Assembly: GCA_965649825.1 (NCBI GenBank)
Contig: OZ287697.1
Span: 1,350,351 to 1,414,350 of the forward strand
Reading direction: 5' to 3'
DNA length: 64,000 bases
DNA from: Penicillus capitatus
Taxonomy: Eukaryota; Plantae; Chlorophyta
This document shows positions 1 through 29,300 of the stretch, in pieces. Position 1 is the stretch's first letter, and the number at the start of each line of letters is the position of its first letter. The notes beneath the pieces were generated by a model, which saw only the letters and a list, made by a program, of their open reading frames with translations, ran no database searches and was not told where the DNA came from. The translations under genes were made by a program, and so were the position numbers.

Positions 1-3000
1 GGAGGAAGCATTGACATCCAGAATGTGACAATGGAAGAATGTCTAGCAGAGTTGTCAGGAGGAGCAATCAGAATGGCATTCTCCAGCGAAGCCGCAGTCC
101 AGAACTCTGTCTTTGTGAGAAACCATGCGAATAATGGCGGAGGCATTGCTTTAGTACAATCATCGTCGCTATTCGGAGATGGTTTGCTCTTCGAGAACAA
201 CACTGTTCATGAGGGTGGCGGGGCACTTGCTTCTGAACAAGCGAGCACCATAGAGATAAACAGCTCCGTTTTCCAAAACAATGCTGGCGGCGATGGAGGG
301 GTGTTGATCCAGCACACCAACACTACTGGGATCTTTACGAATGTCACGTTTGTCAGGAATCAGGCCTGGCGGAAGGGAGGAATAGCCTACGCAACAGAAT
401 CTAATATCAGTTTCGATCGGTGTGTCTTCGAATGGAGCATCGCAGCGGAGCACGGCGGCTTTCTCTATTCGCAAAGAAGCGTGCGTTGTCACTTTAATGG
501 ATCGGTGTTGATCCATGGCTTCTCGCGGGAGGGAGGATGCATCGTCGTGGAGAAAGGGAATCTCACGTTGCAGAAGACATCCATCCATAACTGTATTGCA
601 TCGAAGGATGGAGGTGCACTGCATTTGTCGGAAGGCGCGAACGCGACAATCACTGATTCAAGCATCGACGCAAGTCATGCTGGCGAACACGGAGGCGGTG
701 TTTACATGTCACGCAGCTCTCTCAGTGCAAACAGACTCCTTCTCACTGAAAACATCGCAAAAGGCGACGGGGGTGGCATCTTCTCGGAACACTCTACTGG
801 CATCAGAATTTTCAACGATTCCTACTTCGGGAACAATTCTGCGCAGTCCGGTGGAGGCGTGGCATTGAGAAACACAACAGGGTCCTTGATCGGCGTCAGA
901 ATCTATGGCAACTTGGCATCGAATCGTGGAGGGGCCTGTTGCGCAGAAAGCTCTTCTAACCTGAGGGTCGTAGAATGCACAATCCGTCACAGTGAGGCCG
1001 GAAGCGGTGGCAGTTTCTTTGTCCGGAAGTCGCATTTGAAGCTCATAAGTTCAAAACTCAAAGCTGGACGGGCTTCCGCGGAAGGAGGTTTCATCTCAGC
1101 TACGGAGAACAGCTCGATCCGTGCGGACACCACATCGATGATTGCTGGCGTATCGAAAGAGGGCGGCGCTGTTTTCCTCTCTGAATCTGTCTTCACAGCC
1201 ACGGGCATTCGGATATCGCAGTGCAAGGCAGACGGCGACGGGGGTGCCATCAAGGGCATCGATTCGTCGAGGATGCTCTGCAGTGGCTGCACTCTGAACA
1301 ACAACAACGCAACCCGCGGTGGAGCTGTGTTTGCTATGTATAACGACACTCGAATGCTCTCGATGCAATTAGACAACTGCACTCTCCAGAACAACTCGGC
1401 AACATTTGGAGGTATTCTCGATCACACTAGGGTTAGAGTGAAGTTCACATTCTTCCACGCAGGAGGCGTCCAGATCGTGGCCGGACCGGAGTCCGTATTT
1501 CGGGACTGCCGTGCGGGATGGGACACTTGCAAAGTTACAACTTTGATGAACACAGTCTTTGCAGACAACGAAGCAAAGGCGGCTGGCGGAGCCGTCTTCA
1601 TCGACACAGTTGCTGGACTCCGACTGAGCTGCTCAGATGAATCGGCAGGACATGGACTGGAGTTCTATTCGGAGAAGCGGTGGAAGTCCATGAAGCGCTT
1701 GACATCCACCGAAGACATCTGCCCATCCTGGAAGAACAATTCAGCTGGCAGATACGGACCAGATGTGGCATCTTACGCATCTGATGTCCTAAAGAAGGTC
1801 ACCAACAAAAAGACAAAATGGTTGAGTCCATCAGGCAAGAATCATTACACCATACGCCGCCACAAGAGCGGAAGACCGATTCTCATCGCTTTCACACCCG
1901 TAGACGACCTCGAGCAGAGTCCAGCTGTCGGGATGGACAACAACAACATCGAGGCCGTGACGTTTTCGCCCGATGGATTCTTTGTCGGAAGCGTGAGAGT
2001 GCCACTTAATGCTGCAGGTGTGAATATCAGCACGACTGGCTTCGTGCAGCCTGACGAGTACACAGTTCAGATCGATTTCGAAGGAGCAGATCTGGAGAGC
2101 TTAGAGATCACTGTGGAGGTACAGAAGTGCGAGATCGGCGAAGTTCCTTCGGCAAATGGAACATTCTGCGAACCGTGCAGCGATGCGACATTCAGTTTCT
2201 TTCCAGAAGAGGACTTGGAATGTCATCCGTGTCCAGAAAACGGAAGATGCAACACATCGACCATTCAGCCGATGCCAGGTTACTGGCATCCCTGGCCGTG
2301 CTCCAGTCATCTTCAGAAATGCCTGACGGAGCAGGCATGTGACTTCGACCAGCGCGAGAAGCAACTCTACGAGCTGACGAAAGATATGGAATCGTGTCAC
2401 ATGTCCGACGATCTTGTAGTTGAATACGGAGACGCCCAGTGCGGCACGGTATGGCTGCCCCTTCTCTATCTGAATGCTTTCATTGCGGGTGTTAGGGTCA
2501 CACGGGTCCGCTGTGCGGTTCCTGCAAGCCCGGTTATGGCAAGGCTCAGTTCTTCACTTGCAAAGAGTGTTTCTCCCATGAGGCGAATGTCTTGCTCTAC
2601 CTCCTGTCGATACTGGTGTTCTTGATTTTGGCCGCGATTGCAATGAAAACGAATCTCGAACCCGGTGACCAGTATTCGGGATCGAAGGTCGTCGTCGAGA
2701 TCTTCAAGGTATACGCATGATCTTTCGATTTCTGTCTGCGAGTGTGTTCCGTCAGATTGCGGTGGACTATGCGCAGGTGACGGCTATTGCCATTTCCATC
2801 AACGTCTCCTGGAGCACGACGCTCTCCAAATTCTTCGAAATTACTGGTATCGTATGACAGCGACGATTACTGTTGTCCGAATCTGTTGTCTGCTGGTAGA
2901 ATTGGTCAGCGGCGTCGTCACGGAGGCCATCGAAAGAGCTGTCCATTGTCTCCTGCACGAAGATGATGCCATGGAGCGAGGCATATTTGGTGTTGTGATG

Positions 3001-3885
3001 GACGTCATCACAGTCGTCGCCGTTATGCTCGTGTGCTTGGCTTTCTGGGGCACCGTATCCGTCGTTTCTCGTAGGAACGGAGGTTACTTCTGGAAGCGAG
3101 CGGGGATGAGTTTCTTCGTCGTCTCCTACCTGGGCTACATCTCGCTGACGAGCACCTCCATCCACGTTCTGACATGTCTCGAAGTCCACGACTCGCTGGC
3201 AGTCATGAACAACAGCACAACATCGTACTGGGCCGCGGACACGAACATCCAGTGCCACGAGGGATCTCACGCAGTTCTGGAACGCACACTCGGCTGGCCA
3301 CTCCTTGTCGTTTTTTCGTTCGGATTTCCCGTCGTCGTTCTGTACATCACTGTGTTCGCTGACGAACAGGAGAGGAATCAAGGAGACAGGCGAGAAGTAA
3401 TCGGGTTTATATACCAATCCTACAAGAAGCGTTATTGCTACTGGGAAACCGTCGTTCTCTTAAGGAAGGCGGCCTTGGCCGTCGTCGTCATGCTTGCCTA
3501 TCCGCTGGGGCCAAGTCTACAGGTCATGTTCTCGGCCTCCGTCTTCACGGTGGCTCTCTATTTGCAGACCGTTTGCCGACCATTCGGTGAAGAGAAGGAC
3601 GGGCAGAATGGCCAACAGGACGCGTCAGACGAACTGGATCGACTGAACGACTTGGAAAGCACTTCGCTTCTCGTCTCGCTGCTGACGTTCGTGTCCAGTC
3701 TCTGTTTCGACGCAGAGAATGTGTCGTCGGGCGTCCGTTCTTCTGTCAGTCTGGTGATTCTGGCGCTGAATCTGGTTTTCTTTTCGTACCTTGTTATCGT
3801 CTTCGCGGGAAAGTGTATCGACCGCTGGATAGCTGATCCTAACGCACAGCCTCTTACGTCTGGTTCGAGCAGCGACGAGCCATAA
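1..3885 (+). CDS. R1: Pmp-like beta-helix / Cys-rich / multi-TM surface receptor-like protein, 5' part outside window
   Basis: ORFs 25..2625 and 2665..3885 join through GT-AG introns 1412-1462, 2449-2495, 2709-2755, 2847-2899. Spliced product: GGA[IV]/FxxN repeats, stalk, CEPC...CHPCPENGRC...YWHPWPC...GHTGPLCGSC, then ~9 hydrophobic segments with YWE.V.L.RK and RPF...LNDLE motifs. Stop TAA at 3883-3885. Confidence 0.9.
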
Positions 3886-5529
3886 GTACCTGCTGCACTA
3901 AAACAACCAGTCACTAACTAAGTTTGACGAGTTTCTTGGAAATGCTTCACAAACGTAAAACATGTGTTAGACAGACACTTATTTCTAAAGCGTGGATTGT
4001 GACACCCCTTTGACAAAGCGTGACGAGAAAGGCGTTCATGACCTGAACGACAACATCGTCGAGTTTTGGAGCGGATTTACTCTGTCGGCTATAAAATAGT
4101 CCCGCCCCGATAGAACGATCGAATTTCGAATGTGGACAGAGGTATGTGAGGTAAGAACAAACTTGGTCCTCTGAGAACCCAGAGAACTACTTCGTCTAGT
4201 CCTTCTATTTTCGTTTGGCGAATACACGATGGCTTTCGCGACGAACGACAATTCGTTGAGTGCATTGCGTGCGTTGTTCTGCAAACATGCGTATGTGCTG
4301 TCCTCGTATAAGATACGGCACCCATGCTTGGCGATCATGATCCTTTTCTTCGCGTTCGTGAACAGACTCTTCAGGAGGCGAGGTGATGGAATGAAGTGAT
4401 CATTTAGAGGTGCAAAGCACCGTTCAAGAACAGGTACCGTTGCCCACGGTCGACTGGAGTTTCCGGAGCCGCCAAGGTGCAAGAGAATCTGTTCAGACTT
4501 CCGTTGCAAAAGCAGTCTTTGCAGGGGATACGTCTTCGTCGTCGTTTGCGTTTGCGCACGTTCGTCCGGTGAGGGCGTGTCAACCCGTGTCCAGAGAACA
4601 GAGACACTAGCAGTCGAGTCGTCTCGCCAGACCGGGATATCGACATCAGGCACCGTGCTCGGAGCGCGTCCAGAGCTGTCCTGTTCCAGGCGTTTGTGCC
4701 CGTGACAGTCGTGAAGACGCATTAGCTTAACGCACATAAGATGCACAGATACGTCCGTTCGATGAACACCAATACTTGCAAAACTGCACAGAGGCGCAGT
4801 GCAGAGAGGTGAGCTTCAAGTCTGTTTTAAGATTTCATCCAGCGTCGTTCGGTTTATAGGACATGAAGGGCCACGCTCCAGATCGCGCAAGAAAACCTTC
4901 GGCAACTTTCAATCTCATCTCTGCGACAAGTGCTTTTCTGGCACCAGTACAGTCTTGTCTTGATCATTCACTCTATCATTTTTTGTTTTACTGTGTTTCC
5001 GGCATCACGATCAGAAGCAATATCTCTTATCTGTTCGTTTATCGTCGAATCAGGAGTGAGCACAAGACTTTCATCAGTCTACGGCCTCGACAAGCAGTTT
5101 CTGTCAAGTGGACAATCGAATAAGGTCTTGCAAAACAGGTCACAAAGGAGAGTTGTTCTTCGCGTCACGGTGTCGCCGGTGGCGTCGAACGGAGACGATT
5201 CAAGCGGAAGACTTCTTTACAAGTGTTCGGAGAAGGTCCATAATGCTTCAGAATGTCCTCTGTATACTCGCCTGTCGGCGTGACTTTCAAATTAGATGAG
5301 TCGGCACGTAAGCAGAGCCAGCGAGGAGGGCCTTTTTTATAGAACAGAACCTTCCTAACATGACCTCAAGCGCCCTTCCCGACAGATGACCCATTGACAT
5401 CAAGGCAACCATATCCCCAATCAAAATCTTAGCGACACAGGGTCGAATAGATAATTCTGTTCAATCTAGTGATGATGCAGAACATGCAAAATAGAAAACA
5501 ACCGAGCTCTTCAGGTTATTCATTGTTCT

Positions 5530-5773
5530 TGTCGCCAAGATTTGGTTTGGCGATGGGACTGCCTTGTTTCTGACGGGTCCACGTTCTGGGGGTGCTGGTT
5601 GAATCATCCGAGGCCCTTTTCTCTGGTTCTTATGCTAGGGTGATTCACCTGCCTAGGCAAGTCGCGTCACCATGCGGATATTTAAGGGCAAAACTGAACC
5701 ATTGAACACCTTGCTCCAACAGTTGTAAAGTCTTCCGCTGATTGTCTGTTTGCGTCCGACCCGACCGGCGACA
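5530..5773 (+). mobile_element. Solo LTR (244 bp) of the Gag-like-only LTR family
   Basis: Starts TGTCGCC, ends GGCGACA. Flanked by identical 5-bp TSD GTTCT (5525-5529 and 5774-5778). Aligns with the LTRs at 7692 and 55636 (TGA[ACT]TCA x2, TTCTCTGGTTCT, CACCTGCCTAGG, TATTTAA, CTTCCGCTG). Confidence 0.88.
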
Positions 5774-5802
5774 GTTCTTTTTTCTAATCCTTTTCATGTT
5801 GT

Positions 5803-6060
5803 TGCCAGTACACATCCGGCGTCGTACCTGCCAGTACACATCCGGCGTCGTACCTGCCAGTACACATCCGGCGTCGTACCTGCCAGTACACATCCGGCGT
5901 CGTACCTGCCAGTACACATCCGGCGTCGTACCTGCCAGTACACATCCGGCGTCGTACCTGCCAGTACACATCCGGCGTCGTACCTGCCAGTACACATCCG
6001 GCGTCGTACCTGCCAGTACACATCCGGCGTCGTACCTGCCAGTACACATCCGGCGGCGTA
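5803..6060. repeat. 26-bp minisatellite, ~10 copies of TGCCAGTACACATCCGGCGTCGTACC
   Basis: Nine identical units from 5803 to 6036 plus a near-complete tenth ending CCGGCGGCGTA. No spacers between units. Confidence 0.97.
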
Positions 6061-6875: not shown

Positions 6876-7088
6876 CACATCGAGGCGGCGTACCTGCCAG
6901 TACACATCGAGGCGGCGTACCTGCCAGTACACATCGAGGCGGCGTACCTGCCAGTACACATCGAGGCGGCGTACCTGCCAGTACACATCGAGGCGGCGTA
7001 CCTGCCAGTACACATCGAGGCGGCGTACCTGCCAGTACACATCGAGGCGGCGTACCTGCCAGTACACATCGAGGCGGCGTACCTGCCA
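6876..7088. repeat. 27-bp minisatellite, ~8 copies of TGCCAGTACACATCGAGGCGGCGTACC
   Basis: Seven identical units 6895-7083 plus partial units at both ends. Same orientation and same TGCCAGTACACATC...CGTACC core as the 26-bp array. Confidence 0.97.
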
Positions 7089-7938: not shown

Positions 7939-8047
7939 TTGACACGTTCCTCAGTTTGAATCTCCGTCTTAGTGACGTTGCGCATTTGCTGTGTGCTTTG
8001 CGCCTTTGAGCCCTTACGAGGAAGTTTCAGGAAAACAAGTTACAAGG

Positions 8048-9091
8048 ATGAGTCAAGCACGACGAGAAAGAAGAACGGGGCAAGGTCGGTGGGAGGAAAA
8101 CAGAAGCGGGATTTACGGTATCTACGAGTACCTCGAAAGTTTCCTCGTCTATTGTCGCGAAGACGAGGGGCTCTGCCCCAGACTTCGCGGGCGGAGAACA
8201 TGGATATTGCCGGATGGCTGGTCCACGATAGAGGACGAGTGTTTTTTGGTGGACCTCCAGGATATGTGCGATTTTGTCTACTACGTTTGCCCAAGGCTGC
8301 AAGAGAGGCGCGAGTTGCAAACGACGACGAGACGACTGCGCGAGGAAAGAGAGAGGCTACGCCAGCAAGTGGCGAACCTCGAAGCAGAAAAGGAAGGGTT
8401 ACGAGCGACGCTCAAAATGTCTGAGGCAAGTGCTCTTGCCAGGGGACTGTCAGTCGGGGTTTTACAGCAAGAGGTATCCGAGGCGACAGCAGAAAATGAG
8501 CGGCTCTCAGGGCTTAATACGCAGTTACAACAAGGCATCGCGGAGGCCCAACAAGACACAAACGAGGCCCGTGTGGAGACCTCTTCTACACAACAGAAGC
8601 TGAGAGAGACTGAGACGGCCTACGAAGAGGCCAAGAAGCATTTTATTATGGCACCTGATTTGGTGTCTAATCTTCGGTCGCTGACCGACGCGGTGAAGGC
8701 AGTGCATGACGAAGTTCGGACGAGCAGTGAGAGGACAGTTGAGGCGGTGGCGAGAAGACCACCAGATGGACGAAGCGAGAAGACGCTCACCCAAATGAAG
8801 CGCGTTCTCCACGACATCGGTCGCTATCCGCGGCGACGACGAAGGAAAAAGGCAGCCGACGCAGCTGACGATGGCGGAGGTGCCATCAAGCGCGGTCGGA
8901 TCTGCTATCTGTGCCGGTGCAAAGGGCACTTGGCAGAAAACTGTCCGCGGGTGCGGACAGTTGGGACGACGTCAGCGGAACCGACGATGTCAGATGCGGA
9001 GCAACAGCCAGCGGAATCGAGCGCAGAAGGAGCGTCATCGGGATGGACCATTTTCTCGGCGCTGAGGCGCTTCACCTCGGGCATTGACTGA
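8048..9091 (+). CDS. Gag-like protein: long coiled coil, RRRRKK basic patch, single CCHC zinc knuckle
   Basis: First ATG at 8048 within ORF 7991..9091. Heptad-rich E/Q/R/L segment; CYLCRCKGHLAENC fits CX2CX4HX4C. No protease, RT, RNase H or integrase motifs. Confidence 0.8.
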   Translation: MSQARRERRTGQGRWEENRSGIYGIYEYLESFLVYCREDEGLCPRLRGRRTWILPDGWSTIEDECFLVDLQDMCDFVYYVCPRLQERRELQTTTRRLREERERLRQQVANLEAEKEGLRATLKMSEASALARGLSVGVLQQEVSEATAENERLSGLNTQLQQGIAEAQQDTNEARVETSSTQQKLRETETAYEEAKKHFIMAPDLVSNLRSLTDAVKAVHDEVRTSSERTVEAVARRPPDGRSEKTLTQMKRVLHDIGRYPRRRRRKKAADAADDGGGAIKRGRICYLCRCKGHLAENCPRVRTVGTTSAEPTMSDAEQQPAESSAEGASSGWTIFSALRRFTSGID

Positions 9092-10791: not shown

Positions 10792-13700
10792 TTAAACGCC
10801 GGAAGAAAGACTCGATTCATCGGGAGACCGGCCAAATCCCACATAGGGCATCAAGGACTGGAGATTGTAGCCCAGCCAGATCGTCAGAATCTTCAGTGTT
10901 CCGGCATCTGCATCGATGTGCGTTCCGCATTCGTTCATGGAGAGCTTAATGCACTTGGCACAGTACTTGAAAAGAAAAGAGAGAAGAACAAGAAAGATGG
11001 AGATGTTGAGAACAACGCAGATGATTGAGAGCGTCATTCCACGCCACTCTTTCGTGAGACCCTCACTTTCCAGTATGCTGGCTATCAGGATCGTCAGGTG
11101 CGAGACGAAAAGGGCAGACAAGTCTATTTTGTTCAGAGCATCAAATTCCTTTCTGTACGGCATCACTACAATCTGCAATCCCATCGCAAGCAAGATGAAG
11201 ATGGCGAGGGATGTGATAAAACCCAGACTGTCAAAGCGGTGGGCACAGAACACCAGAAAAGCAATGATCGCCTTCCTCAGCACGATGGAAACCTCCCAGT
11301 AGCGTCGCCACCCGGATCCATAGCCACGGTACAGGAATCCAGTGGTCCGATAGACCCACCTATCCGGATGGTCGAGCAGTTCTTTGGGCGATGTGAGGAT
11401 TGAGATGAAGGCGATGAGAAGTCCAACATAGACGATGCTTACGAACGGGAGAATCCAGATCACCAGCATCAAGTGTTGGCCCTCGAAGCATCTCAGACTT
11501 GTGTCCACTGCCCAATAACTGATCTCTTCATATTTTGTCGTGTCTATGATCTTCTCATCGTTCTGCGTTCCATCCAGAACGTTGTATACACGAACGCAGA
11601 GGACAACGCTAAGTGTTGTCTTAATCACTGATGCGGAGGTTATGTACCATAGTGCCATGAGTGAAAGCAAAGATCTCTGTGCGATGTAACGGAGTGGCCG
11701 TTGCATTTGATAAACGAGTGCCATTACCATCCAGAACGCAATGAGCAACAGGAATGCAGTAACAGGAACGACAGAAACGCTCACGATCGTTCCCCAGACG
11801 GTCGGATGAAGAAACTGCTTTGCTTTACTCAGACAGACAACGGAGCGCCGGATGCTCTCTGCGGCGAGCCCGCTGATGAACTCTATACAGCACAGAACGA
11901 CGATAAGGTAATGCAGATGGTCGACATGGACATCTGAGGACCTGCTATCTTTCCCAGGATGAGAACAGGAAATGCCCATCCAACATTCAAGGTTGCAATC
12001 AGCACTGTCACTTGAACGTAGTTCAGCGTTATCTGCAACAACGGTCACTGTTAGGGAAGAAAACGTGCACGATTGTCACACCTTGAACATCTCGGTAACT
12101 CTCCATTGTGCCAGGGCCGCTTCAGTCACATGCACCATTTCTGCTGAGGAATCTATACCTTCGACCTCGTGTGATCTGTCAGAAAAGGCTTCTTCTCTCA
12201 GACTTTCTGACATGCTTCGGATCGAAAGATCTGATAGTTGAATGCTACGGGAAATCCGTCTGTGGCCGGAAAGCATCATCCGTTGGCGGTTTGTAGTGCA
12301 CAATGTTCCCTTGATCGTAATCCCGGATAAAAACAACAGAATCACTACTGATATGCAGATCACCAGTACATTGCCGGTTTTAACAGGACACTCTTGGCAC
12401 TTGGAAGAAAGAGAACTGCCGTATGAACTCTCACACGATCCGCAGAGTGGACCAGTGTAACCCTGCATACACAACAGAGATCGCCAACATCTGAGCAAAT
12501 TAGAATTCTAAACTTGCCTCTTCACACTGTGCCTGTTGATATTCTTCGATCTCCTTGCTGCTGATGTTGCAGTTGGAAATATCCCGTGTCAGTTGCTCCA
12601 GTTTCTCAACGCGTTTCTTGTTGTGACATGCGTCCGCGCTCAGACATTTGCTGACGTTCTTGGAACAGGGTGATGCGTGCCAATATTCCTCGTTTGGCAA
12701 GATGATTTGACTGCTACAGTCTCCGTTCTCTGGACACGGACGACATTCGGCATCATTTTCTGGGGAGAAATTGAAAGAGACGGCGTTGCAAGACTCACAG
12801 AACGTCCCATTGCCGGAAGGAACTTCGCCAATGTCACATGGCTTCACCTCCACAGTGATCTCGAACCTCTCCAGGTCTGCTCCCTCGAACTCAATCAGAA
12901 CTCTGTAATTGCCAGGCTGCACGAAGCCAGTGGCACTGAAAGTCGTGCCTTCCATCCCCAGAGTCTTGCGAACACTTCCAGCCAAGAATCCATCCGGCGA
13001 GGACATTACAGCCTCGACGTCTTCACTGTTTTCTCCAACGGCCGGGCCTTGTCCGAGTTCATCCACGGCTGTTAAGACGATCAGGGGAATCGGTTCTCCG
13101 CTTCTATGTTTGTGCACGGTGTAATTACTCCCACTGACCAAACTCAGCGCTTCCATCTGTTCATCAACGATCTCCTTTCGGATATCGATTGCAGAGGTTG
13201 CCACATCCCGTCCGTATCTCCCAGCTGAATTATTCTCCCAGGATGTGCAGATGTCATCAACGGATGTCAGGCGCTTCATGAAGTCCCGCTGCTTCCCCGA
13301 ATAGAATTGCAGTGCCTGTTCTTTTGATTCAGCTGAGCAGTTCAGTCGGAGGCCAGCAACTGTGTCGATGAAGACAGCTCCGCCTGCGGACCCTGCTCTG
13401 TTGTTAATCATCGACGTGTTCACCAGAGCCACGACTCCACATTCATCCAGTTCTTCCAGACACGTCTGCGATATGGACTCAGTTTCGGCGGCGATCTGGA
13501 TCCCTCCTAAGTAAAGAACAGTGTGAACCTCTCACTCTGTCGGTCTTGTGATGAATACCTCCAAATCTGGCTGAGTTGTTGAAGATATCGCTGTTGTCCA
13601 GTTGCACGGAAATGGACTGAGTAAAACTATACTCAAAGAATATGGCTCCGCCGCGGGATGCTTCGTTGCCCGCCAGAGTACAGCCACTGCAGAGCAACCT

Positions 13701-16199
13701 TGATAAATTATATACGATGATGGCACCCCCATTTGTCATTGCCTCGCATTGTGAGATCTGTGTGCTGTAGATCTCAAAGACAGATTTGGAGAGGAAAAAG
13801 GCACCGCCTTGCTCACTGGCAAACATGTGAAGAGCTTCAGTCTTCCGGATAGAAACGTTTGAAGAGGATGCGTAGATTCCTCCGCCATTTCTTGCAGATC
13901 CCTCGGTAAAGTTGCACTTCCGAATCGACAACACAGAGCCTTTGATGCGTAGAGCACCACCAGATCTGGATGCTTTGTTCTGGTCAAACTGACTGTCGGT
14001 TATGATGCCAGAGGAGTTGCGTGCGAGGAAGATGCCCCCGCCAAATTCAGCCGAGTTGCCGGAGTAATGCGATCCCGTGTCTGTGAAACTGCAATTAGGA
14101 TAGCATTCGATCGCGCCGCCTCCCTCGGCCGCGCCGTTCTCCGAGAACGAGCAGTCCTTCACGCGTATCTTGGAAGTTCCGCCAGAGAGGAATCCACCAT
14201 ACTTATCTGCAATCAGACCAGACGCGAAGGTATCCTGGACGGAGACGATCGAAGAGAATGCGTAGATTCCTGCACCGTTTTCAGCAGATCCCTCGTTGAA
14301 GACGCATTTCTGAACCGAGAGGACAGATTCATCGACGTAAATGGAGCCACCAGATCTGGATGCTTTGTTCTGGTCAAACTGACTGTCGGTTATGATACCA
14401 GAGGAGTTGCGTGCGAGGAAGATGCCCCCGCCAAATTCAGCCGAGTTGCCGGAGTAATGCGATCCCGTGTCTGTGAAACTGCAATTAGGATAGCATTCGA
14501 TCGCGCCGCCTCCCTCGGCCGCGCCGTTCTCCGAGAATGAGCAGTCCTTCACGCGTATCTTGGAAGTTCCGCCAGAGAGGAATCCACCATACTTATCTGC
14601 AATCAGGCCAGACGCGAAGGTATCCTCGACGGAGACGTTCGAAGAGAATGCATAGATTCCTCCACCGTTTTCAGCAGATCCCTCGTTGAAGACGCATTTC
14701 TGAACCGAGAGGACGAAGTCTTGTACGTAGATGGAGCCACCAAATCTGGATGCTTTGTTCTGGCCAAACTGACTGTCGGTTATGATGCCAGAGGAGTTCT
14801 TTTCCACACGTATGGCTCCTCCATATCCTGCTTCGTTCTCTCGATACAGGCAATCTTTGATGGACGCTGTTGCATTCTTTAACTGCAGGGATGTATTGCT
14901 CGCACCTTTCTGGCTGAACGAGATCGAATTCCAAATGAATTGTGACCTTGACATGTTCAAGAAGCCTTCCACAACCTTGAGACTCATGCATCCGTTTTCT
15001 GAACTGTTCATGCGATCCACTGACGTCTCTGATCTAGGAGGTGCGTGAAAAACCGTCGTGTTGGTATTCTTAGAATCAAACGGTTTGTTCTGATGAATGA
15101 TGACGTCTCTCAGTCGATTCCGTCTAGACAGGATCACACCGCAGTGGCCATCGCAGGTGTTAGTCTCGAAGACGAAGTCGATCAGTTCCAGCTCAAAACA
15201 AGATGGAGATTGCATGGCGAGTCCTGCGCCATTGATCAGGATGTTATTCCTGAAACTGACGTGGTGGAACTGAATGGTGCCTCCATCGCGACTGGATACA
15301 CAGTTTTCAACTTCTACGATGGATCCAAAACTCCCAGATTCGAACGAGCACTCCTCAAAGATCAGATTGGCGAAAACGACACCCGCCGACCTGAACGTGA
15401 GGTCGACATCAGACAACTGCAGATTCGAGAACTCAAATCTCACCTCACCAAGAAAACACCCTCTCTTCTGTTCGGACAGGTTAAGGTCGCCTTTGCGTCG
15501 GAACGAGGGAACACACCTTCCTCGACCTCGGGACTGCTCACTAGGGCTGTCAATGTCAGTGGCCATGGTATGACGATGCGCGAAGAAGGCCGGATTCTGC
15601 TCTTCGAACTGAAGGAGAGGACGTCGCCTGGCTTCGTACAGTCGACAATGACTTGGATGTCATCTTCGACGTCAGTGAGAAGCGAACGGTCTATATTCCA
15701 CGTTCGCGTCTCTATGTTGAGATGGTCTCTGATGGTTCGCTCGCTGAACGAACAAGGAACGCCTGCTAAGACCAAGACCACTGGCGTCAAGAAAAAGCTC
15801 TCGAAGACACCAAGGAGCCTCACTTGTAGTAGCTTCGTCGCCAGAAACATCGTCTTGACGCAGAGAGCGGCCTTCATCCCGGCCTCTTCCAGCCATAGAC
15901 GGGTGTTCTTTCTCTGCCGCCTCGCGCGTCTTGGCCGTGAGGGGCGGAGCTGTACTGTGCGAGTGTTTCGTCGGGAACGAGGCAGACTCTTTCGCGCCAG
16001 GCGGTTCAGATGCCTTTCTTTCTGAGCGTGCAAACGGATGTGAGGTCGAGGTTTTGGCGGAAAAGGAAATGGTCGAGGTTTCTTCGGCTGTCTCTGCGGC
16101 TAAAGCTCGGCTTAGGTGAGACCTCCGACAGGTGAACTCGCCCGCATTTGTACTGAAGACGACGAAGGTCAGCAGCAGACCAAGGAAGGTACGTCGCAT
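10792..16199 (-). CDS. R2: Pmp-like beta-helix / Cys-rich / multi-TM surface receptor-like protein (complete)
   Basis: ATG 16199 with signal peptide MRRTFLGLLLTFVVFSTNA. Exons in ORFs 15672..16199, 15440..16033, 13479..15566, 12500..13432, 12076..12498, 10792..12048. Introns include 15443-15391, 13558-13507 and a GC-AG intron 12517-12463. Stop TAA. Confidence 0.92.
13945..14800. repeat. Near-identical 390-bp (130-aa, 5-rung) tandem duplication in the R2 beta-helix exon
   Basis: Anchor TGG[TC]CAAACTGACTGTCGGTTATGAT recurs at 13981, 14371 and 14761. Boundaries approximate. Confidence 0.92.
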
Positions 16200-16949: not shown

Positions 16950-19900
16950 TTAAGGCGTGCTGTGGGTTTCGGCCTCAAGTTTGCGATGGAGTGCGGCAAG
17001 ACGACTGGCCCACTTTCGAATCACATTTCGTATAGATTCGGGCAGATGACCCACAAGATAGATGGCCAACACACGCAATCGACTTGCGTCGGCATCAAAG
17101 GAAACATTCTGATTCGTAAGCACAGCTCTGAGATGGTCTGCCATGGATCTCAATAGAATTACCAAAAGGAAGAAAAAGAACAGCAGATTGAGTAGCAGTA
17201 TCACCAAACCGATGGAAAGACGAGCGCTCGACGAGAGACGATCCGTATCGAAGCAGAGACTAGAAATAAACGTCAGGAGCGATATGAGCAGGGAGTAGCT
17301 TTCCAGGTTGTTCAGCAGATCGAGATCGTCTCTGAACGGTCGACAGGCTGTTTGCAGGTAGAGAGCGACGGTGAAGACGAAGGCAGCAAACATAACTTGG
17401 AGACTGGCACCGAGTGGATAGGCAAGAACGACAACACCAGCAATGACAGCCTTCCGTCCGATGACGACACATTCCCAGTAGCAGTGACTGTCTTTGTAGG
17501 ATTGATACATGAAACCGAAGAGATCTTGAGTCCAACCCTCGTTCCTGTGCGTCCGTTTGCCCAGAGAGATGACGCATGCGGTGATGAGGGGAAATCCCAG
17601 AGATAGCAAGATCAGACCGGGCCAGCCCACGACGCGTTCCAGCATCGCGTGGGATCCCTCGTGGCATCGAATGCTGGTGTCTGTAGTCCAGTATTGTGTT
17701 GCGGCCGTTTCCATGGTCTCCGTCAGTTCATTGACCTCGATGCAGTTGAGGATGTTGATGAAGGTGCTTGTCAGTGAGATGTAGCCCAGATGAAGAACGA
17801 CGACGACACTGAGGAACGCTCTCTTCGCGAGGTATGTCCAGTCTCGAGGATTGGACGGCATGACAATGATCCAGAAAAGAATGGAGATGAGGATGACAAG
17901 GCTGACGGCAGCAATGTCCATCAGGATGCCAAAAACGGATCGCTCCACGATGGCGCCGTCGGGAAGAAGACAATGCACAGCCCGTTCGATGGCATCCGCG
18001 ACGACACCACTGACAAGCTCTACAAGAACGGATGAGCAACTGAGTGCGTCAGATGGTGCAAATTTTTCATGTCGTTACCGGCAGCTTCGAATAGTCGGAC
18101 CAGATTTAGGTCCCAAGACACGTTAATCGAAACGGCCACGGCCGTTACTTGGGCATAGTTCACCGCAATCTGGCAAAAAATCTGGTCTCATGCAAAACGA
18201 TGAAGGATATTGCTTGCCTTGAAGACCTCGACCATCATCTTACGAGCCGACGAATCGGGGTTTGTGGAGCCAAGATTCGCTCTCATGGTGATCGCCGCCA
18301 GGACTAGGAAGACCAAAACGGACAAAAGCACGAGGAGGACATTCACAGCATCTGAGAAACACTCCTCGCACGAGACGAACTGGACCATTCCGTAACCGAT
18401 GTCACATGAACCGCAGAGCGGTCCTGCATATCCCTAAAAACACATGGCGATAGAGCTCGCATCCACATGCTGGCAAGGTACATACCTCGCTACACTGAGC
18501 TAATGTGTAGTTCTTGATGAACATTTCATTGAAGTCACAGTATTCCACATCATCTGTGAGTTCTAACAGTCTATGCTGCCGACTGACGTTGTTACAGGCA
18601 TCTGTAGAAAGGCATTTCTGAATGTGCGGAGAGCAGGGTGTCGGATGCCAATAGCCTTGATTGGGCAGGATGATTCTGGTGGTACAGTTTCCGTTGTCGG
18701 GACAAGGCAGACACTCGGAGTCTTCATCATCCAAGTCAAAGTTGTAGGTGGCGGCACTGCAGGGCTCGCAGGACGTCTTGTCTTCGGACGACTCTTCTCC
18801 GATCTTGCATCGCTGCACCTCCACCACGATCTCGAAATCTCTCAGCGTTTCTTCGCCGAATCCGAAGAGAATCCTGTAGTTGCCTGGTCGTGCGTGAGCA
18901 GTGACATTGAATTCCAGATCAGATTTCATGAGAATGCTGTAGTCTCCAGCGAAGAGATCGTCTGGAGATGAAATTGTGGATACGACAGGATGGTGATCTC
19001 TTCCAGTCGCCGGAGTCTGTCCGAAATCGTCAACGGCTCTGACAGCGACGGGAAAGGAGCTTCCGCTTCTGTAAGGTCCGATTCGGCATGGATCCTTCGT
19101 ATTGGAGACGGTCGTGTTTTCGCCGTTGAGTCTCACCGTTGCCACGATCGTGGAGGCGAAGGTGGCAGTATCGTCACCATACTGTCCAGCGGCGTTCTCC
19201 CTCCATGTCCCACAGACATCGTCCGTTGAGTTGAGTCTGCCGACGCAACGCTTCCGCGTGTGGACACCCGTCTTCCCCTCATTCTTCGAAGGGCAATCGA
19301 TGTACACATTCTGACTGCAGCCCATGAACACCGCTCCTCCTGCCTTGCGAGCTCTGTTGCCCACGAAACTCGTCTCCAATAGCCTGACGACTTCGCATTT
19401 GTCGGGATGGTTTGCATGTGACGTTTGATCACTGCTCGATACATGCAGACCTCCTAAAGAGCACACACATGCTATCTTCATACACTCGGGATGGGATCTC
19501 ACCTCCAAATCGAGCAGCATTATCGAGCACCTTGCATCTTCTGAGTTCGGCGATCAGACGTGTGCTGTTTCTGTAATCGAGAGAGAACGCTCCACCGTTG
19601 CCTTCAGCTCTGTTTCCTTCGAGGGTGCAGTCTGTGCACGAAAGAGAAGAATTCTCCCCTCTTAAGGCACCACCGTCGGCGGATGCTGCGCAGTCGGAGA
19701 CGAGGAGATTGGTTGCTTCGAAAGCGACAGACGATACTGAGATGGCTCCACCTCTTTCGGCACTGCCATTGATCATTTCGGCGTCTGTTATTGAGATTGA
19801 TCTCCCTGAACTCGCATAGATGAAGCCGCCATCCGACCCAGCGGTTCCTCCTCGAAACTCCGAATGCACGATCTTCAAACTGGATTCTTCGAGATGGAAG

Positions 19901-22670
19901 GTGCCGCCGCTCCCAGAGCAGACGTTATTCTCAGAAGTCACACGGATGACTGAACCATCAGTTCCGCTCTGATAAACGGCCCCTCCGTTGTGCGCAGAGT
20001 TGCCCTTGAGTGTCACATCCGCAAGCTTGAAGCTGCATCGCTTGAAGAGGATCCCGCCTCCAAGGGCGTTTGCTGTGTTGCCCTCGATGACCATTGCCTC
20101 GCCAGTGAACTGCTTCCCCTCTGCAACAATTGCCCCACCGCTGTTCTCTGCTTCATTCTCCGAGAAGTTGCTGTTCGAGATGTGCGTGATCATGTCGATG
20201 AGATGCATCGCTCCTCCGTCTCCCGAAGACGTGCAGCTTTGCACGGTCGAGTCCTGGATATGCAGGAATCCGTTAACGGCCTGCAGGCAGCCACCGAGTC
20301 TCGCATTGCCGTTCTTGAGCGTCGAACTGCTGATGGAGGCAACGGAGTTTCTCTTGACGTACAGAACTCCACCGTTCGCCGCACTGCTGTTGTCGAAAAT
20401 GCAATGGACAAAGGTCGTGATCGACGCATCGATGAAGAATGATCCGCCCTCGGTGTCAACTGCGCTGTTGACGAAGGAGACGTTGACAAAGTGTGCAACC
20501 GACTCTGGTTCTTGGAACACGACTCCTCCATTGTCTGCCACGGTGTTCTTGAACAGAGAGTCCCGCACTGAAATCCTCGTCCGAAATCTGACGAAGAGAC
20601 CGCCTGCATGATCGCCCGCCGTATTACTCTCCGCGATCCATCCCTTTCCAGCGATCGTGGAGAATTCTGCATACAGAAGTGCACCGTCGTCTTCTGCACG
20701 GTTGGACGTCATGGTGGAATTGGTGATGACGGCAGTGGCGTTCGTGAGCCGCACGGCACCGCCATCGACTTGGGAAACACATTTTCGCAGTGTGACGTGC
20801 TCGAGCTTGAGATGGCCCTGGTACGCCTGAAGACATCCGCCGTCTGCTCTGGCTTGACCGTCTTCGAGCATTGAGTGTGATATGGTGACGGTGGCGTTGT
20901 CTCGGATGGCAAAGAACCCTCCATTCTCTGCGCTGCCTTCTGTGAAGTTGCATTCGGTGAAGGTCATGTTCGCTTCAAATAAGCGAAGGGATCCACCGTT
21001 CTCTTCTGCCGAGTTCTGCGTGAAGAGGACACGGGTGAAATGCCCTTCTGCCGTTCCCCTCGCACAAATCGCCCCTCCGATTCGCGCCTTGTTCTCCTCA
21101 AACGCGGCGTCGCTCACAACGAGCCTGGTCTGACCCTCGACGTAAATGGCACCCCCTTCGTTGTCAGCATTGTTTGCCTTCAGCAGGATTCCATCCGCTG
21201 TGACGTCGGAGTTCACTGCGTAGATGCCTCCGCCGTTGTCTTGTGATGAACATGACGTCACTGTTACGTTCTTGATGAAGGCTCTCGTGTCCCGCAAAGC
21301 GATGGCCCCGCCTTTCTTTGCCCTGGTGCCATCGAAGGACGAATGGCGCAGGGTCACATCTGAGTCCTCTTGGGCAGAGATCACGGCTCCATCTTCAATT
21401 TCGATGTCTCGAAACTGGCAATTGTCGATCACAGTTGTAGAACGCGTGAGATGAATGCAGGAACTGTGTGAGCGATTCCTCATTTCAGCGTTTGGAGGGA
21501 TGCCCGAGAATTCTGAATTTTTGAGCTTAAGCCGACCGTCTTCGATTCGAAAGATCTCCACCTCGTTAGCGAATGCCTTAATGCCTCTGGCATCGGTTTT
21601 CGAGCCTTGGTTGCCACGGATGAAATGGGCGTCGCGTGTGCCGGATTTCAGCACCCCCTCGATGACGAAATCCCTCAGCAGGTTATCTGCGGACAGGACG
21701 ACGCCACAGGCACCGCCGCATTCGTTTCGCTCAAATGTGACGTCGATCAGTTCCATCCTCGAACAGGATGATGCGCCCCCATCAACACCCGAGGCGCCGA
21801 CGAGCACATTGTCCTTGAAGCTAACATGGCGCAGCTGGATGACGCCCTCGGTGTCCGTTGACAGGCATTCCTCTACCTCCACAATAGCCCTGGATTCGCC
21901 AGAGCCGTCGAAGTAACAGCCCTCGAAACGAAGATTGGCCAATACCACACTATGGGTCCTGAAACGCGAAACGCCATTCGCCCCTTTCGTTGCAACACGA
22001 GAATTGCACTCACTTGACGAGGAAGATGCCCTCTTGCGCATCAGGGCAGGTGAAGGTCGCCTTTCTCGGAGCTCGTGGGTAGAAGCCGTCGATGCCTCGA
22101 GTGCGATTCTCCGTCACTGAGCTGATGGTGAGATTCCACGGAATCGCGAGTCGCCTTACAGGCTTGACAGAACCGCGAACGTCGACAAGCAGCGTATCGC
22201 CTTTCTGCGTGCAGTTGACAACGACCTGGAGGTCGTTCTTTACTTCGTCGAGAACTGCCTCGTCGATGAGCCACGTGCGCGTTTGGGCGTGAAGGTATTT
22301 CCGTTTCTGTTGGGCTCGGAGGTCGCACTCGTACTCTGCGCAGACACAAAGGCCCGACGTTCGGCATCACGCCCCGGGCGTTGTTCGTGGATTGACCTGT
22401 ACGAAGAGATACGCCGTCGGCGTCGCCGTGCATCTCTTCCTGCAGCACGCGTCGACGTTGACTCCCGTGTTTTTGAGGAGCGGGATGTGGGCTATCTTGT
22501 GGAGCATGTACAACGAGGTCGGCGTCAACGCTCGACAGTTCAGCGCTCTCCACCACAGGTCGTGCGTCTCCCAGTGGCAGCATCTTATCTGCTGACGTAT
22601 TTTGAGATGAAGGGCGACATGAGACAGTTGTCAGCAGCAAGACGTGAAGAAGGAGGAATCTGAGAGGCAT
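16950..22670 (-). CDS. R3: Pmp-like beta-helix / Cys-rich / multi-TM surface receptor-like protein (complete)
   Basis: ATG 22670 (MPLRFLLLHVLLLTTVSC signal peptide). Cap exon (TRTWLID...NCTQKGD...IPWNLT...TFTCP...EGIFLVK) is open. Beta-helix exon 21958-19503. Further exons in ORFs 18402..19520, 18188..18388, 16950..17978. Stop TAA. Confidence 0.9.
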
Positions 22671-23361: not shown

Positions 23362-26300
23362 ATGCAGCGCTCGTTTGTTCTGCTCCTGTGCTGCGCTTCA
23401 TGCAGCTTTTATGTCTTGTCCATTGCCGACCGAGAACCATTCGCATACGACCAGCAGTTTTCCCACTCCACTGATGAAAGTACGTATCGTTCCGACACGG
23501 AGGTGTGCAATTGTTTCGCCGGCAGACGACGCGCGCACAACTGTCGGACGCCGTCCACTATCAACCATCCACATAGATGTTCTCTCGGAGACTCCTGTTG
23601 AAGCATCACTGGTGAGCCCGCATAGCCAGTAGCGAAACGTCGGCATTGTACTTTTGCGTCAAGGTCCGCGACGGAGAACGCATTCTGCTCCAATCCGAAG
23701 GATTCGACGCCGCCAGCGAACCAGGTCGGAGATTTCTCTCCCGATTCTCCTCTCAGACGATTCACCGAGCGCGTGTTCTAGAGCGCGAGTGTTCTCTGCG
23801 ACGCGTCGACATCCGCCGCTACTTGGACGAGAGCTCGAGAACGTGGACAATAGACGATGACGTGCTCGATGCAATCGACAGCGACGTGCAGTCGCTCGTC
23901 GACTGTACGAATGAAGGAGACGCTCTGCTGTTCGACTCGACGAAGATAATCCGACCCTCCGCTCGCGTAGTCCTCCCGTGGCCGCTGACCCTGAGCGCGT
24001 TCGTGGAACACGCCGAGCTCGAGGAGGGCGTGTTCCCGAAGGCACTTAAGAAAGCGACGTTCACGTGTCCCCACGAGAACGAGGGCATCTTCCTCGTCCG
24101 GTAGGTCCTGTCTTTCACAGTAAGTGTTGTCGACGGTGTGTGCCTTGCAGAACCGGAGGTTCGACTCTCGCAAACTTAGCGTTCGAGGGATGCACATTCG
24201 GCGAATCAGAAGAGGAGAAAGCGATGATCGAAGTGGATGGGTGTGCCTCGGCGCGAGCAGACCGTACTCTGCTTCTACACAACTTGTCCTTTAAGGAGAA
24301 CCGACTCGTCGATGCGACGGGAGTCTGGGTGCACTCGACATCGTGTCTGGCTCTCGACATGCGAAGCGTCGAGTTCTCGGACAATCAGTGCTCGAGCAGC
24401 GGCTGCGGCGCCATCCTGTCGTCGGGTAACAGCATCGAAGACTTCACGGCCAGGCGGAATCGCCTGACTGAAGAACACGACCGCCAGCCGTCCGTGCTAA
24501 ATGCTCCGGCTGGATCGAGGACAGCGGCGAGCGGCATCAGGGCTGTCCACAACGACCTCTCCGCGATGCACGTCGTGGAAGGATCGCTCACCTTGACGGA
24601 TTCGACCTGTTCGCATAACTCAGTGGAGGCATTTGATGACGAAGAGCCCTTCGGTCCTTGCATCCATCTCGTCCGATCGACTGCTACGATCCAGGAATCC
24701 CGATTCGAGGGAAACGAAGGGTACTGGGGAGGGTCCGTTTCTATGTGGTCCTCTAACATCTCTCTTTCCGACTCAGACTTCCAAAGCAACAGAGCCGAGA
24801 AGGGCGGTGTCCTATACGCAGAGAGAGGCAGCACAGTCTCTATTGAAAGATGCCGCTTCACGGAGAACAGGGCAAGCGAACACGGAGGCGTTGGCTTCAT
24901 CGAGTCTTCATCTTTATCCATGAGCGATTCAGCCATGAGTGGCAACTCTGCCACGGATGGCGGCGGAAGTCTTCGTCTCACAGATTCGGAGTTGGCGATC
25001 GAAGCATGTCATTTTCAGAACGGAAGTGCATCCTTCGGGGGGTTCATTCACGTACGGAGAACATTGGTAAATGTCAGCGACTCAGAGTTCGCAAGAGGCA
25101 CAGCAACACAAGGGGGATGTATCGCCTTAGACAAGGGGAGCCGATTTGTGTCTCAGAATGACGTCTTCAAATCCAGTTCTGCCAGACGCAATGGAGGAGT
25201 TGTCGATGCGCAGCGGAACAGCTCTCTGTCCTTCATCAATGCGACTTTTGTATCAAATACAGCGGCGATGGATGGTAGCTGCATTTTTGCTGAAGCTTCA
25301 CACGTCTTTACGAAACAGTCCCTTGCGACCAACAACACAGGACTTGGCGACGGAGCCTTCCTCAGCGCCGCAAATCGTAGCAGTGCAGAGATCGTTGATA
25401 CCACTTTCCTTGGCAACTCGGCCGATTTCGGTGGCGTCGTCTCTCTGCGGACGATGAGCTCAGTGGAAGTACATGGAAGTCTCTTTTCCGGGAACGCAGC
25501 AGTTGGAGGAGGCGGAAGCTTTTACAGTGACAGTGATTGCACTCTCTCCGTCCATCTGTGTCGATTCAATAACGGAACGGCTGGCAATGGTGGAGGATTT
25601 GTCTCATCATCTGACAGTGAAATCAGAATCGTTAGTTCTTACTTTGCCAATGCTTCTGCCGTTCTCGGAGGATGCTTCGCTGTTTCGACCGGCGCGAGAA
25701 TGACTGTAGAAAACAGCACCGTTGCTTTTTGCAGCGGACAGAATGATGGTGGCGCTATCCATTCTTATACCTCAACAGTGGTCGTCAGGAACAGCATCGT
25801 GGCGAACAGTACAAGTGACCGTGGTGCTGGCGGCGGCATTTCCTGTGTGCAGATGTCCCGAATAAGCGCAGTAAATTCGTCCTTCGAGGCAAACTCTTGT
25901 ATATACGGAGGCGCCATATCTCTCATGGACAAGAGCGTGGCCACAGTCGCTGGGTGTCGTTTTTCAGGAAACACTGTTCAACGGACTGGTGCATCCCTGT
26001 ACGTAGATGCCTCAAATGCCACTTTGAGTCATTGTATTTTCACAAACGGAAATGCTTCGGATGGAGGCGCTCTTTCTGTCCACCGGAGCGCACGAGCAAG
26101 TTTGACTGATTCCTCCATCTCCTACGGGATGAGTAGTCGGTCTGGCGGCGGAATCACTGTAGGCAGCGAAAGCGTTTTGGAGATGCGCAATGTCTCCATG
26201 GAAAACAACACATCGCTGAATAGTGGAGGCGCTATCTATGTCGAAGATTCGAGCACAGTGCACGTTCGAAACTCAAGCTTCGTCAGAAACCAGGCAATGG

Positions 26301-29300
26301 CATTCGGCGGCGCTATTGTTGCGATCACCGGATCAGAACTTATTGGAGATGCATTGGTTTTTGATGAAAATTCTGCACGCGAAAAGGATGGCGGAAGCAT
26401 CGGCAGCCTAGAAGCCCATAGACTTCAGATCTCAAATTCTCGTTTCAGTCGCGGTATGGCAAACAACGGCGGCGGCCTAGTCATCCGACATAATACGGGG
26501 GCTAGTGTATTTGTCAACTGTTCATTCGAGAGCACCTCAGCTCTGTCAGTTGGCGGCGCATGTGTTGTGACGAGTTCCGTTGCGAAGTTTGAAAACTGCA
26601 GCATGGTGGGAAACAGAGCTGGACGGGTAGGAGGCAGCTTGGCAGTCACCAATGCAACTGTCGACATTCACAACTGCCACTTCAGTGGTAACAATGGGAC
26701 ACATTCCGGTGGTTTCGTAGGGGCCACGAATAGCGAGATCCGAGGGCGCAATGTATCCATGGTGGACGCATCTTCAGAGTACGGAGGCGCAATGTGGTTG
26801 TATGACTCTGCGATCCAGCTGGAAGATGCTCACTTCTCAAGGTGTCATGCAATTACGTCTGGCGGCGCCGTCTTCGGTTCGGAAAACTCCTCTTTTCGGT
26901 GCACCAGCTGCGTCTTCGAGGACAACGCTGGGCTGGGCTGGGGAGGTGCACTATGCTTCATCGGCGTAATGTCGCACCCCGTCTCTGTCCAGATAGATGG
27001 ATCCACTTTCGAAAACAACGTAGCCACACATGGAGGTGAGACCGATACCTGCAGTCCACTGATAACAGAGTCTTGTGATCAGGTGCCATAGCCTTCCTGA
27101 GAGACTCCGATCAGGCGAACTGCGCGATCCAAGATGACACCTGTTCTTTCCTGGTCGTGACAGACTCTGTCTTCTCCGAGAACATGGCAGAGATCGTCGG
27201 AGGGGCTATCTTTGTGTCAGACATCGACAGCATTCGAATGAGTTGCTCTGCCAATGAGAACTGGCAAAGCAGATCAGAATTCTACGACAGAACAGAGCTG
27301 GAGGCCTTGGACGTATTGAGATCTGCAGACGACATCTGTCAGTCGTGGAAGGGCAACCAAGCTGGAGCATACGGGGACGATGTCGGGTCAGCTGGTGCCG
27401 GAGTTCGCATCACTGTCATCCCTGACAATCTGCACAACCCCGTAGAGGAAGTGTCAGGAAACAGGCTAGTCGTCGAAGAACACTCGAGCGGAAAGCCTCT
27501 TCCCGCCATTCACATGGAGGTTGTCGATGGATTGAGTCAAGGACCGGCATTTGGTCTTGAGAGGCCCATTGTCGAAGCTGTGATGACCTCTCCAGATAAT
27601 TTCTTCACTGGATCCATCAAGATTGAGATAGAGGAAGGCGTCGGGAACTTCTCAGGAGCGGTCGGGTTTGGACCAGAGGGCGTCTACGAATGCATCATCG
27701 ACTTCAGCGAACGACTAATCGAGTCGCTTGTGGTCGAAGTGCACGTCAGGGGATGTAGGCTCGGTGAAGTGGCCGCTGCCAACGGAACCGTCTGTGAACC
27801 TTGCACCTCTGACACATACAACCTTCAGCCAGGCAACGACGGGACAGGATGTCATCCTTGCCCCGAAAACGGAGACTGTGCCACTCACGTCATCCTGTCA
27901 GCAAAGGGATACTGGCATAAGACTCCTTGTTCCGAGAACATCCAAGAGTGCATATCTTCAGAAGCGTGCAGTTCAGAAGAGAGGGAAGACAAATTGACTG
28001 CAGCAACGAGGAACATCAGCAGCTGCGAATTCGATGAGGAGTTTAAACAGAACTACACGGAAGCTCAGTGCAGAGAGGTGATCTCTGGGTGCTATGGTGT
28101 ATTTTGCTTGAGATGTGTCGTCACAGGGACACGAGGGCCCTCTGTGTGGATCCTGCAAAGCCTCGTACGGCAAGTCTCACTCTTCATTGTGTGAGGAGTG
28201 CTTCTCTGGATTCGGTAACTATGCCTTGATCTTTATGTCGTTCTTGGTGCTCCTGGCACTCTCGTATATCACAGTGAGAAGCAACACAATCTCAACTCCA
28301 ACTTCGGGGGGCAATTCTGTCGAATCCATTCGCCAGCTGAGGTCTCTGCCGAGCAGATCAATCTCGGTCCCTGTTAATGAAGAAATGGTGGAGATGATAG
28401 TCACCGGTCGCGTTCCGCCGGAGATTCTGCAACCAGAACTGTATTCAGCACAAGTGTCCGAAACGCCATCCGAAGATGCAGACTTGGCCAAGTGGAAGAC
28501 TGTAGAAATGTTCAAGGTAGAGCAAACCTCCCCTGTCTAAAAGACACTTTGCTGCATGTAGATCATGGTGAACTTTCTCCAAGTAACGGCAGTCGCCATC
28601 GCCATCAACGTCAAGTGGACTCTGATGCTGATAGCTCTGTTCGAAGGCGCAGGTGAGAAGAGGGTCTTCAGAAGAACGTTTATTCTCCCTTGTTCTTTGC
28701 AGAGTTCATCAGTGGAATGACCTCACAGGCGGTGAATAGATCAGCGGATTGTGTCGTCCCTGACGATGCCTCGGTGGATCGCTCGATCGCCAGCGTCATC
28801 ATCGACATCTGCCTCCCATTGGGAGCCATCTGTGTGTTCAGCGTGATCTGGTTAGCCGTCAAGGTCAAGCGAGGAGAGCCATGGACCCATCTGCTGAAGA
28901 AGATCATCCTGACGACCATCGCCGTCCTGTACATAAGTTACATATCCCTCACCAAGACGTTCGTCGGCATTCTGGACTGCGTGGAGGTTTACGATTCTAT
29001 CGATTCCGAGTTCGACGTCACGTCAAACTACTGGTCCACAGACACCAAGATCGAGTGCTACAAGGGACCCCATGCCTTGTTAGCCTTTTTGTTGGCATGG
29101 CCTTTATTGATCCTTTTTTCCTTCGGGTTTCCGTTGATCACTGCCTGCGTCATCGTTAAGAACGTCGAAGAGGACTACGAGCGTGGATGGATCTACGAGA
29201 CCTGCGGCTTCTTGTACCGTTCGTACAAGAAGAACTATGTGTTCTGGGAATCTGTGATTATGCTTAGAAAGGCTGTTCTGGCAGTGATCGTTGTTTTTTC

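Follow-up and report, generated by a model that had tools for sequence, protein, structure and literature searches.

A chimeric gene pairing an R6-type ectodomain with an R7-type membrane module in a tandem array of PMP-repeat membrane-protein genes

Introduction

How does a gene come to resemble one of its neighbours along the ectodomain and another along the membrane module, and is such a gene real rather than a product of the assembly? This question is raised by R1, the first gene in a stretch of 64,000 nucleotides (here called the window) that is part of contig ctg340394_13x_l in an ENA metagenome assembly (sample ERZ25074695, 13x). The DNA is eukaryotic, with a G+C content of ~52% and GT-AG introns of ~47-53 nt. 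Eight paralogues of one family, R1 to R8, lie in the window (Table 1), and a ninth, R0, is located directly upstream (in L001).

The family members share a common layout, in which the ectodomain, a beta-helix of Chlam_PMP repeats, is followed first by a stalk formed by a beta-sandwich, then by a Cys-rich region and finally by a multi-pass membrane module. The repeats (Pfam PF02415) score 30-50 bits across the family, against a gathering cut-off of 20.6, with an E value of 2.9e-07 in R1. The Cys-rich region opens with the motif C-x-P-C-P-E/A/D-N-G, detected by a six-frame motif scan in all nine paralogues of the array. A Pfam search with the C part returned weak matches only, namely DUF7630 (E 0.003) and, in one of 12 members, TRP (PF06011, E 0.0084), a domain carried by a Bryopsis relative. 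A profile search of the PDB with the TM module found no match, and the C-terminus, which is a multi-pass hydrophobic module, had no Pfam match to an autotransporter beta-barrel. The best named relatives are proteins of Caulerpa lentillifera and Bryopsis with 24-28% identity, which makes a green alga likely as the source. A literature search found no description of this eukaryotic family of PMP-repeat membrane proteins.

Results

Table 1. Genes, tracts and related features of the array, in window coordinates unless stated otherwise.
Feature	Position	Strand	Description
R1 (chimeric gene)	1-3885	+	Family member, 3' two thirds inside the window; exons in the window 1-1411, 1463-2448, 2496-2708, 2756-2846, 2900-3885
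R6-type tract of R1	1-2184	+	92.6% identical to R6 41377-43614; 343 of 350 sites R6-type; dS patchy, 0-0.36
Mosaic junction zone	2173-2241	+	Identical run, then R7-like 2187-2201, R6-like 2202-2235, R7-like from 2241
CHPCPENG codons of R1	2221-2244	+	From the six-frame motif scan
R7-type tract of R1	2241-3897	+	Cys-rich region, three introns, multi-pass TM module; 92 of 97 sites R7-type
Relic	4578-5150	+	Orphan degenerate group-I Cys-module pseudo-exon; frameshifts, stops; starts at motif codon 1
R2	10792-15566	-	Group-I ectodomain with a different, R2-type membrane module
R3	16950-22041	-	Family member
R4	24065-29742	+	Family member
R5-R6 block	31404-43614	+	Colinear with the R0-R1 block (L001 1494-14833); 68-99% identity, patchy
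R5	32430-37559	+	Family member
R6	39523-45499	+	R1/R6-type ectodomain with group-I membrane module (ancestral pairing); motif at 43591
R7	49195-54930	+	Architecture ancestral for the R7 type; motif at 53047
R8	59388 to past the window end	+	Family member

R1 is a true in-frame chimera, composed of an R6-type ectodomain and an R7-type Cys-rich and TM module. By BLASTN, R1 19-2244 aligned with R6 41395-43614 at 92.6% identity over 2226 columns, while the following part aligned with R7 in two segments, R1 2173-3632 with 52996-54461 (85.9%) and R1 3598-3897 with 54637-54942 (81.4%). The same searches gave no match of R1-N to R7 nor of R1-C to R6, and R6 and R7 shared only four weak matches of 37-97 nt with each other. 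The 51-nt intron at R1 1412-1462 is 90.2% identical to its counterpart at R6 42782-42832, and the identity of introns is in general ~90% on the R6 side and 63-89% on the R7 side. Within exon 2, informative sites left of 2173 were 343 R6-type versus 7 R7-type and those right of 2240 were 5 versus 92, with the optimal breakpoint falling between 2184 and 2187 (Fisher p 3.9e-76). In agreement, trees built from separate segments grouped R1 with R6 in the beta-helix and the stalk, and with R7, then R3, in the Cys and TM parts. The preliminary description of this DNA, made from the letters alone, had proposed that R1 is close to R6 over ~18-2180 including the intron, that it is like R7 and not R6 from ~2240, and that the swap occurred in frame, inside an exon, at the stretch coding for CxPCPENG. 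Each of these points stands, and the identity switch persisted in the formal comparison, being located in exon 2 within an open frame.

The same description held the junction to be patchy (R7-like, R6-like and then R7-like again), which we could reproduce with the reservation that the first patch is possibly a change in R6. R7-type bases are found at 2187, 2188, 2195, 2196, 2199 and 2201, followed by a stretch (2202-2235) where nine of ten sites and the state of a 3-nt indel are R6-type; tested post hoc, the two patches have binomial p values of 4e-10 and 2e-11. Across 2187-2201, R6 is similar to R0 and R5, and what looks like R7 sequence in R1 may instead stem from a short conversion of R6. 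On the left, the mosaic is bounded by a 10-nt run, CCGTGCAGCG (R1 2173-2182), that is identical in R1, R6 and R7 and is the longest exact run between R6 and R7 in ~1 kb. Nucleotide identity between R6 and R7 is highest around the motif, reaching 62-65% in 60 nt, versus 35-55% elsewhere in the stalk, and at the final switch (2235-2241) the shared runs reach at most 5-9 nt. A high-identity stretch of tens of bases was looked for at the junction between present-day R6 and R7 and none was found. The likeness at the junction is one of microhomology or homeology, not of classical homology. Thus, the claim that the conserved motif supplied the homology for the swap is only partly sustained; the local peak in identity exists, but it is low and its longest exact run is that of 10 nt.

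Since the contig belongs to a metagenome assembly at 13x, R1 could be suspected of being an assembly chimera. However, R1 differs by 7% from R6 and by 14% from R7, which does not fit a join of their reads, and a mosaic of 15 nt and 34 nt is beyond what an assembler can create. Moreover, an independent contig of the same sample, ctg330099_6x_l (L002), found through the protein cluster of the long ORF of R1, carries the identical R6/R7-type junction at a divergence of ~3%. L002 and L001 share 96.7% identity over 9.4 kb, a value that rises to 98.1% when L002 is compared with window 1-5920. An assembly origin of R1 was rejected on the grounds of these divergences and of the shared junction, and such an origin, or a recombinant origin of R6 or R7 instead of R1, is in our judgement hardly credible.

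The open reading frame of R1 begins at L001 10001, which is 2589 nt before the window. A manual splice model gave a single open frame of 2092 aa in full with GT-AG borders at all four introns, and the second copy on L002, R1', is similarly uninterrupted after splicing, with 2093 aa and GT-AG at four of four introns. Between R1 and R1', pN/pS is 0.38 in the ectodomain (N) part and 0.19 in the membrane (C) part; omega is 0.49 for R1N/R6N and 0.35 for R1C/R7C. Purifying selection is evident from these ratios and, as the frames are intact in both copies and all ratios, including those to the relatives, are below 1, the hybrid appears to have been maintained as a working gene.

Which of the three genes is the recombinant was addressed with outgroups, comprising X3 (a 34x contig of the same sample) and X4a and X6b (from a sister organism in a second sample, ERZ26696514). 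The ectodomains of R1, R1', R6, X3 and X4a form a clade with 98% bootstrap, while in their TM modules X3, X4a and X6b share 57-77% identity with R6 and only 40-45% with R1 and R7. As the relatives with an R1/R6-type ectodomain have R6-type TM modules, R6 carries the old pairing. On the other side, R7b (L008 5562-11271, same contig) is 90.5% identical to the whole of R7, and R7x (L007, sister organism) is 80-86% identical to R7 along both halves; the pairing in R7 is hence old as well, because both match R7 over its full length. R6 or R7 as the recombinant was rejected, the outgroups assigning the ancestral architectures to these two, and R1 is, judged from the compared sequences, the derived gene. 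The R7-type tract of R1 stops ~12 nt past the stop codon of R1. The 3' flank of R7 is 77% identical in R7b and 72% identical in R7x over ~450 nt and is absent after R1, and since this flank is still conserved in both relatives of R7, the 3' end of the tract is a real boundary. R7x is itself split by an LTR retrotransposon (RVT_1, rve; L007 4695-9338), inserted at ~R7 coordinate 52730.

A nucleotide tree of the C part, (R7x,((R1,R1'),(R7,R7b))), was obtained with 81% support, and the JC distances were 0.152 for R1-R7, 0.143 for R1-R7b, 0.146 for R7-R7x and 0.089 for R7-R7b. From the tree and the distances, the membrane module of R1 left the R7 lineage at about the time when the two organisms split. 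The event is thus old, and present-day R6 and R7 are relatives of the parents, not recent donors. In terms of synonymous divergence, dS is 0.33 for R1C/R7C and on average 0.13 for R1N/R6N, yet the latter falls into two classes, a background of 0.27-0.36 and values of ~0 at roughly 544-900 and 1498-1857. The values of 0.33 and 0.27-0.36 place both halves of R1 at one background age, while the stretches with dS of ~0 indicate that R1 and R6 exchanged short patches recently across 41 kb. The preliminary description had the swap take place between genes 40-50 kb away. Exchange over such a distance does occur, as the recent R1/R6 patches illustrate, but the event that formed R1 is old, and its parents were perhaps adjacent, ~9 kb apart, in a duplicated block.

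Downstream of R1 lies a further fragment of the family, the relic, with a nucleotide identity of 63-73% to the modules of R0, R5, R6 and R8 versus 42-54% to other types. As it is equidistant from these four, it has no definite place within group I, and a recent R6 copy whose module was merely displaced does not account for it. In the interval 3898-4584, no ectodomain sequence was found upstream of the relic, and these ~690 nt between the stop codon of R1 and the relic match no compared locus.

Other genes change type near the motif as well. In R2, whose motif has its first base at 12745, the change to the R2-type module comes ~54 nt beyond that base. The gene that precedes R1' on L002 (1238-8341) combines an R5-like ectodomain (93.5%) with an R2-like membrane tract, the change being a mosaic over ~200 nt up to the motif. 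Its R2-like tract includes 600 nt past the R2 stop and is followed by a 3' remnant of the replaced R5-type module, while L001 has at this position R0, whose module is of the R5 type and shares 96-99% identity with that of R5. The R2-type gene in the neighbourhood is inverted; provided that this gene, or one closely related to it, served as template, the hybrid originated from a copy event and not from a crossover. A further gene on L008 joins a group-I stalk to an R2-type module.

Perhaps such positions reflect what survives rather than where breaks occur. Breakpoints could have fallen anywhere, with only in-frame joins between independently folding modules being retained, and a filter of this kind acting at a domain boundary would likewise leave the surviving junctions at the motif. 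The low identity and short exact runs between R6 and R7 at the motif agree with this account, as does the spread of the junctions in the family over ~-200 to +60 nt around the motif instead of at one point. In an AlphaFold model of the stalk and the Cys exon, the predicted beta-sandwich (residues ~90-230) ends just before the motif, as a module boundary might; the mean pLDDT of the model is only 64, the beta-sandwich being its only moderately confident part, and the matches of a Foldseek search with it were generic, being Ig-like or of macroglobulin type, and had low TM-scores. Nonetheless, the relic, a pseudogene, starts at motif codon 1 although no functional filter acted on where it begins, an argument that fails if this boundary belongs to the event that formed the R1 junction. 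That the mosaic is bordered on its left by the very run which is the longest exact match of R6 and R7 in ~1 kb also speaks against selection as the sole explanation, which we consider highly improbable.

Several observations concern the array in general. Recent internal tandem duplications of the beta-helix block are found in R2 (13957-14798, 390 nt x 2.2, 96% identical), R8 (60502-61161, 312 nt x 2.1, 94%) and R5 (33846-34535, 234 nt x 2.9, 70%), and the length of the ectodomain is changing through them. The last exon of R7 contains a 30-nt tandem repeat in 7.8 copies (54428-54662), coding roughly for GQNGQQDAAD, of which R1 has a single unit (3598-3631). Between the genes, direct repeats of ~245 bp that are ~75% alike occur once alone (5530-5773) and twice as pairs (7701-7925/9164-9389 and 55636-55880/57103-57347), the pairs flanking ORFs at 7991-9091 and 56085-57035 with a coiled coil and a weak zinc-knuckle match; together they resemble small elements of the LTR type. 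The spacer between R1 and R2 also holds near-perfect tandem arrays of related sequence at 5803-6060 and 6876-7088, with units of 26 nt and 27 nt in ~10 and 8 copies, respectively. Finally, the ectodomain coding sequences of R0 and R5 are 68-80% identical versus 87-95% for the flanking intergenic DNA (L001 2393-5900 compared with window 32300-35600), which points to either a fast divergence of the ectodomains or converted spacers.

Discussion

We lean towards an origin of R1 by a non-allelic, copy-type repair event that started at the motif island and displaced a group-I module, a reading that we hold to be probable, if only just. It is favoured by the combination of a discrete tract, a relic starting at the motif and the parallel case on L002. 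In fact, the R7-type segment has the properties of a conversion tract, with two boundaries (2185/2241 and 3897), retention of the R7 type (in R7 and R7b) and an unchanged gene order; we infer the direction and the number of the conversion events. The event would have begun in the short conserved island around CxPCPENG and would have proceeded by ectopic gene conversion, or by synthesis-dependent repair with template switching. Pairing would have relied on short homeology only, i.e. the exact run of 10 nt within ~70 nt at roughly 65-70% identity, and the mismatched intermediate may have given rise to the mosaic junction. Copying of the 1.7-kb segment of the R7 lineage would then have stopped just after the stop codon, and the resident group-I module, pushed downstream, would have decayed into what is now the relic. 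Since that event, the R0-R1 and R5-R6 blocks have kept swapping short patches over 41 kb.

An unequal event of the haemoglobin Lepore type can also be envisaged. Here, R5-R6-R7, perhaps together with R8, would have been duplicated, and a deletion or crossover between motifs ~9.4 kb apart would have fused R1; R0 would be the copy of R5, and the relic could be the remnant of a copy of R8. The colinearity of R0-R1 with R5-R6 fits this scheme, as the right end of the colinear block is the motif of R6 and R1 and R7 is the next gene directly after R6. Background identities are similar throughout (75-80% for R0/R5, 82-85% for R1N/R6N and 86% for R1C/R7C), in line with the dS of R1C/R7C lying within the background range of R1N/R6N, and the relic is 72.6% identical to R8, which fits neutral decay of that age. 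In these two respects, the colinearity with R5-R6-R7 and the similar divergence of both halves, the fusion accounts for the data equally well. Yet it requires a duplication ending 12 nt past the stop codon of R7 and, for the relic, a second, homology-free deletion ending exactly at a motif. In addition, the R2-type gene nearest to the parallel hybrid on L002 is inverted, and a crossover would not yield that hybrid if this gene was the template. We therefore regard a fusion by deletion or crossover as possible but rather unlikely.

The Cys-motif island might be a built-in recombination hotspot at which ectodomain and membrane cassettes are swapped, an idea that we find improbable. If this is true, its repeated use would be recorded in several genes (R1, R2, R0' and the second one on L008) and in the boundary of one pseudogene, and the island would offer a combinatorial route to receptor diversity in an alga.

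R1 is an ordinary product of non-allelic recombination among tandemly arranged genes, which is a well-known process. Its value lies in that the parental types can be viewed side by side with an outgroup, another copy and a fragment left behind, for a reassortment of modules in an undescribed eukaryotic membrane-protein family. It is worth mentioning that hardly any sequence identity at the join is needed for a successful exchange, and that blocks 41 kb apart still exchange patches. The view of how such families evolve is not changed by this locus; its chief use would be in annotating and tracing the family in green-algal and metagenome-derived genomes. General reviews deal with chimeric duplicates and with gene conversion (PMC3449122, PMC3924838).

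In its architecture, the family recalls the chlamydial polymorphic membrane proteins (PF02415), with which it shares GGxx/FxxN-type repeats forming a beta-helix. It differs from them by lacking the autotransporter barrel, by having instead a stalk rich in Cys and a helical membrane module of several passes, and by being encoded by eukaryotic genes with introns. As to the organisation of the array, a likeness exists to the Hcr9/Cf and NLR clusters of plants, which are tandem receptor-like arrays with fast-changing ectodomains, patchy interlocus conversion and reassorted modules. Those clusters, however, belong to a different protein family and to different organisms, and the comparison implies neither ligand nor function.

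Hybrid genes produced by non-allelic recombination between tandem paralogues include haemoglobin Lepore, hybrid KIR genes, RHD-CE and GYPA/B. Similarly to these, R1 is an in-frame fusion of neighbouring paralogue types with its junction in a conserved stretch, and it has been kept as a gene that appears to work. Unlike in the human cases, both parental types of R1 are still present and the identity at the junction is far lower; moreover, its R7-type tract ends sharply just past the stop codon, with an orphan module further downstream. The var genes of Plasmodium and the VSP genes of Giardia are mosaic antigen families that recombine at conserved blocks. With them the present family has in common that short conserved blocks flank variable ectodomains and that chimeras arise there. 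Nevertheless, the array bears no sign of programmed or high-frequency switching, and the event that formed R1 is ancient and fixed on both contigs.
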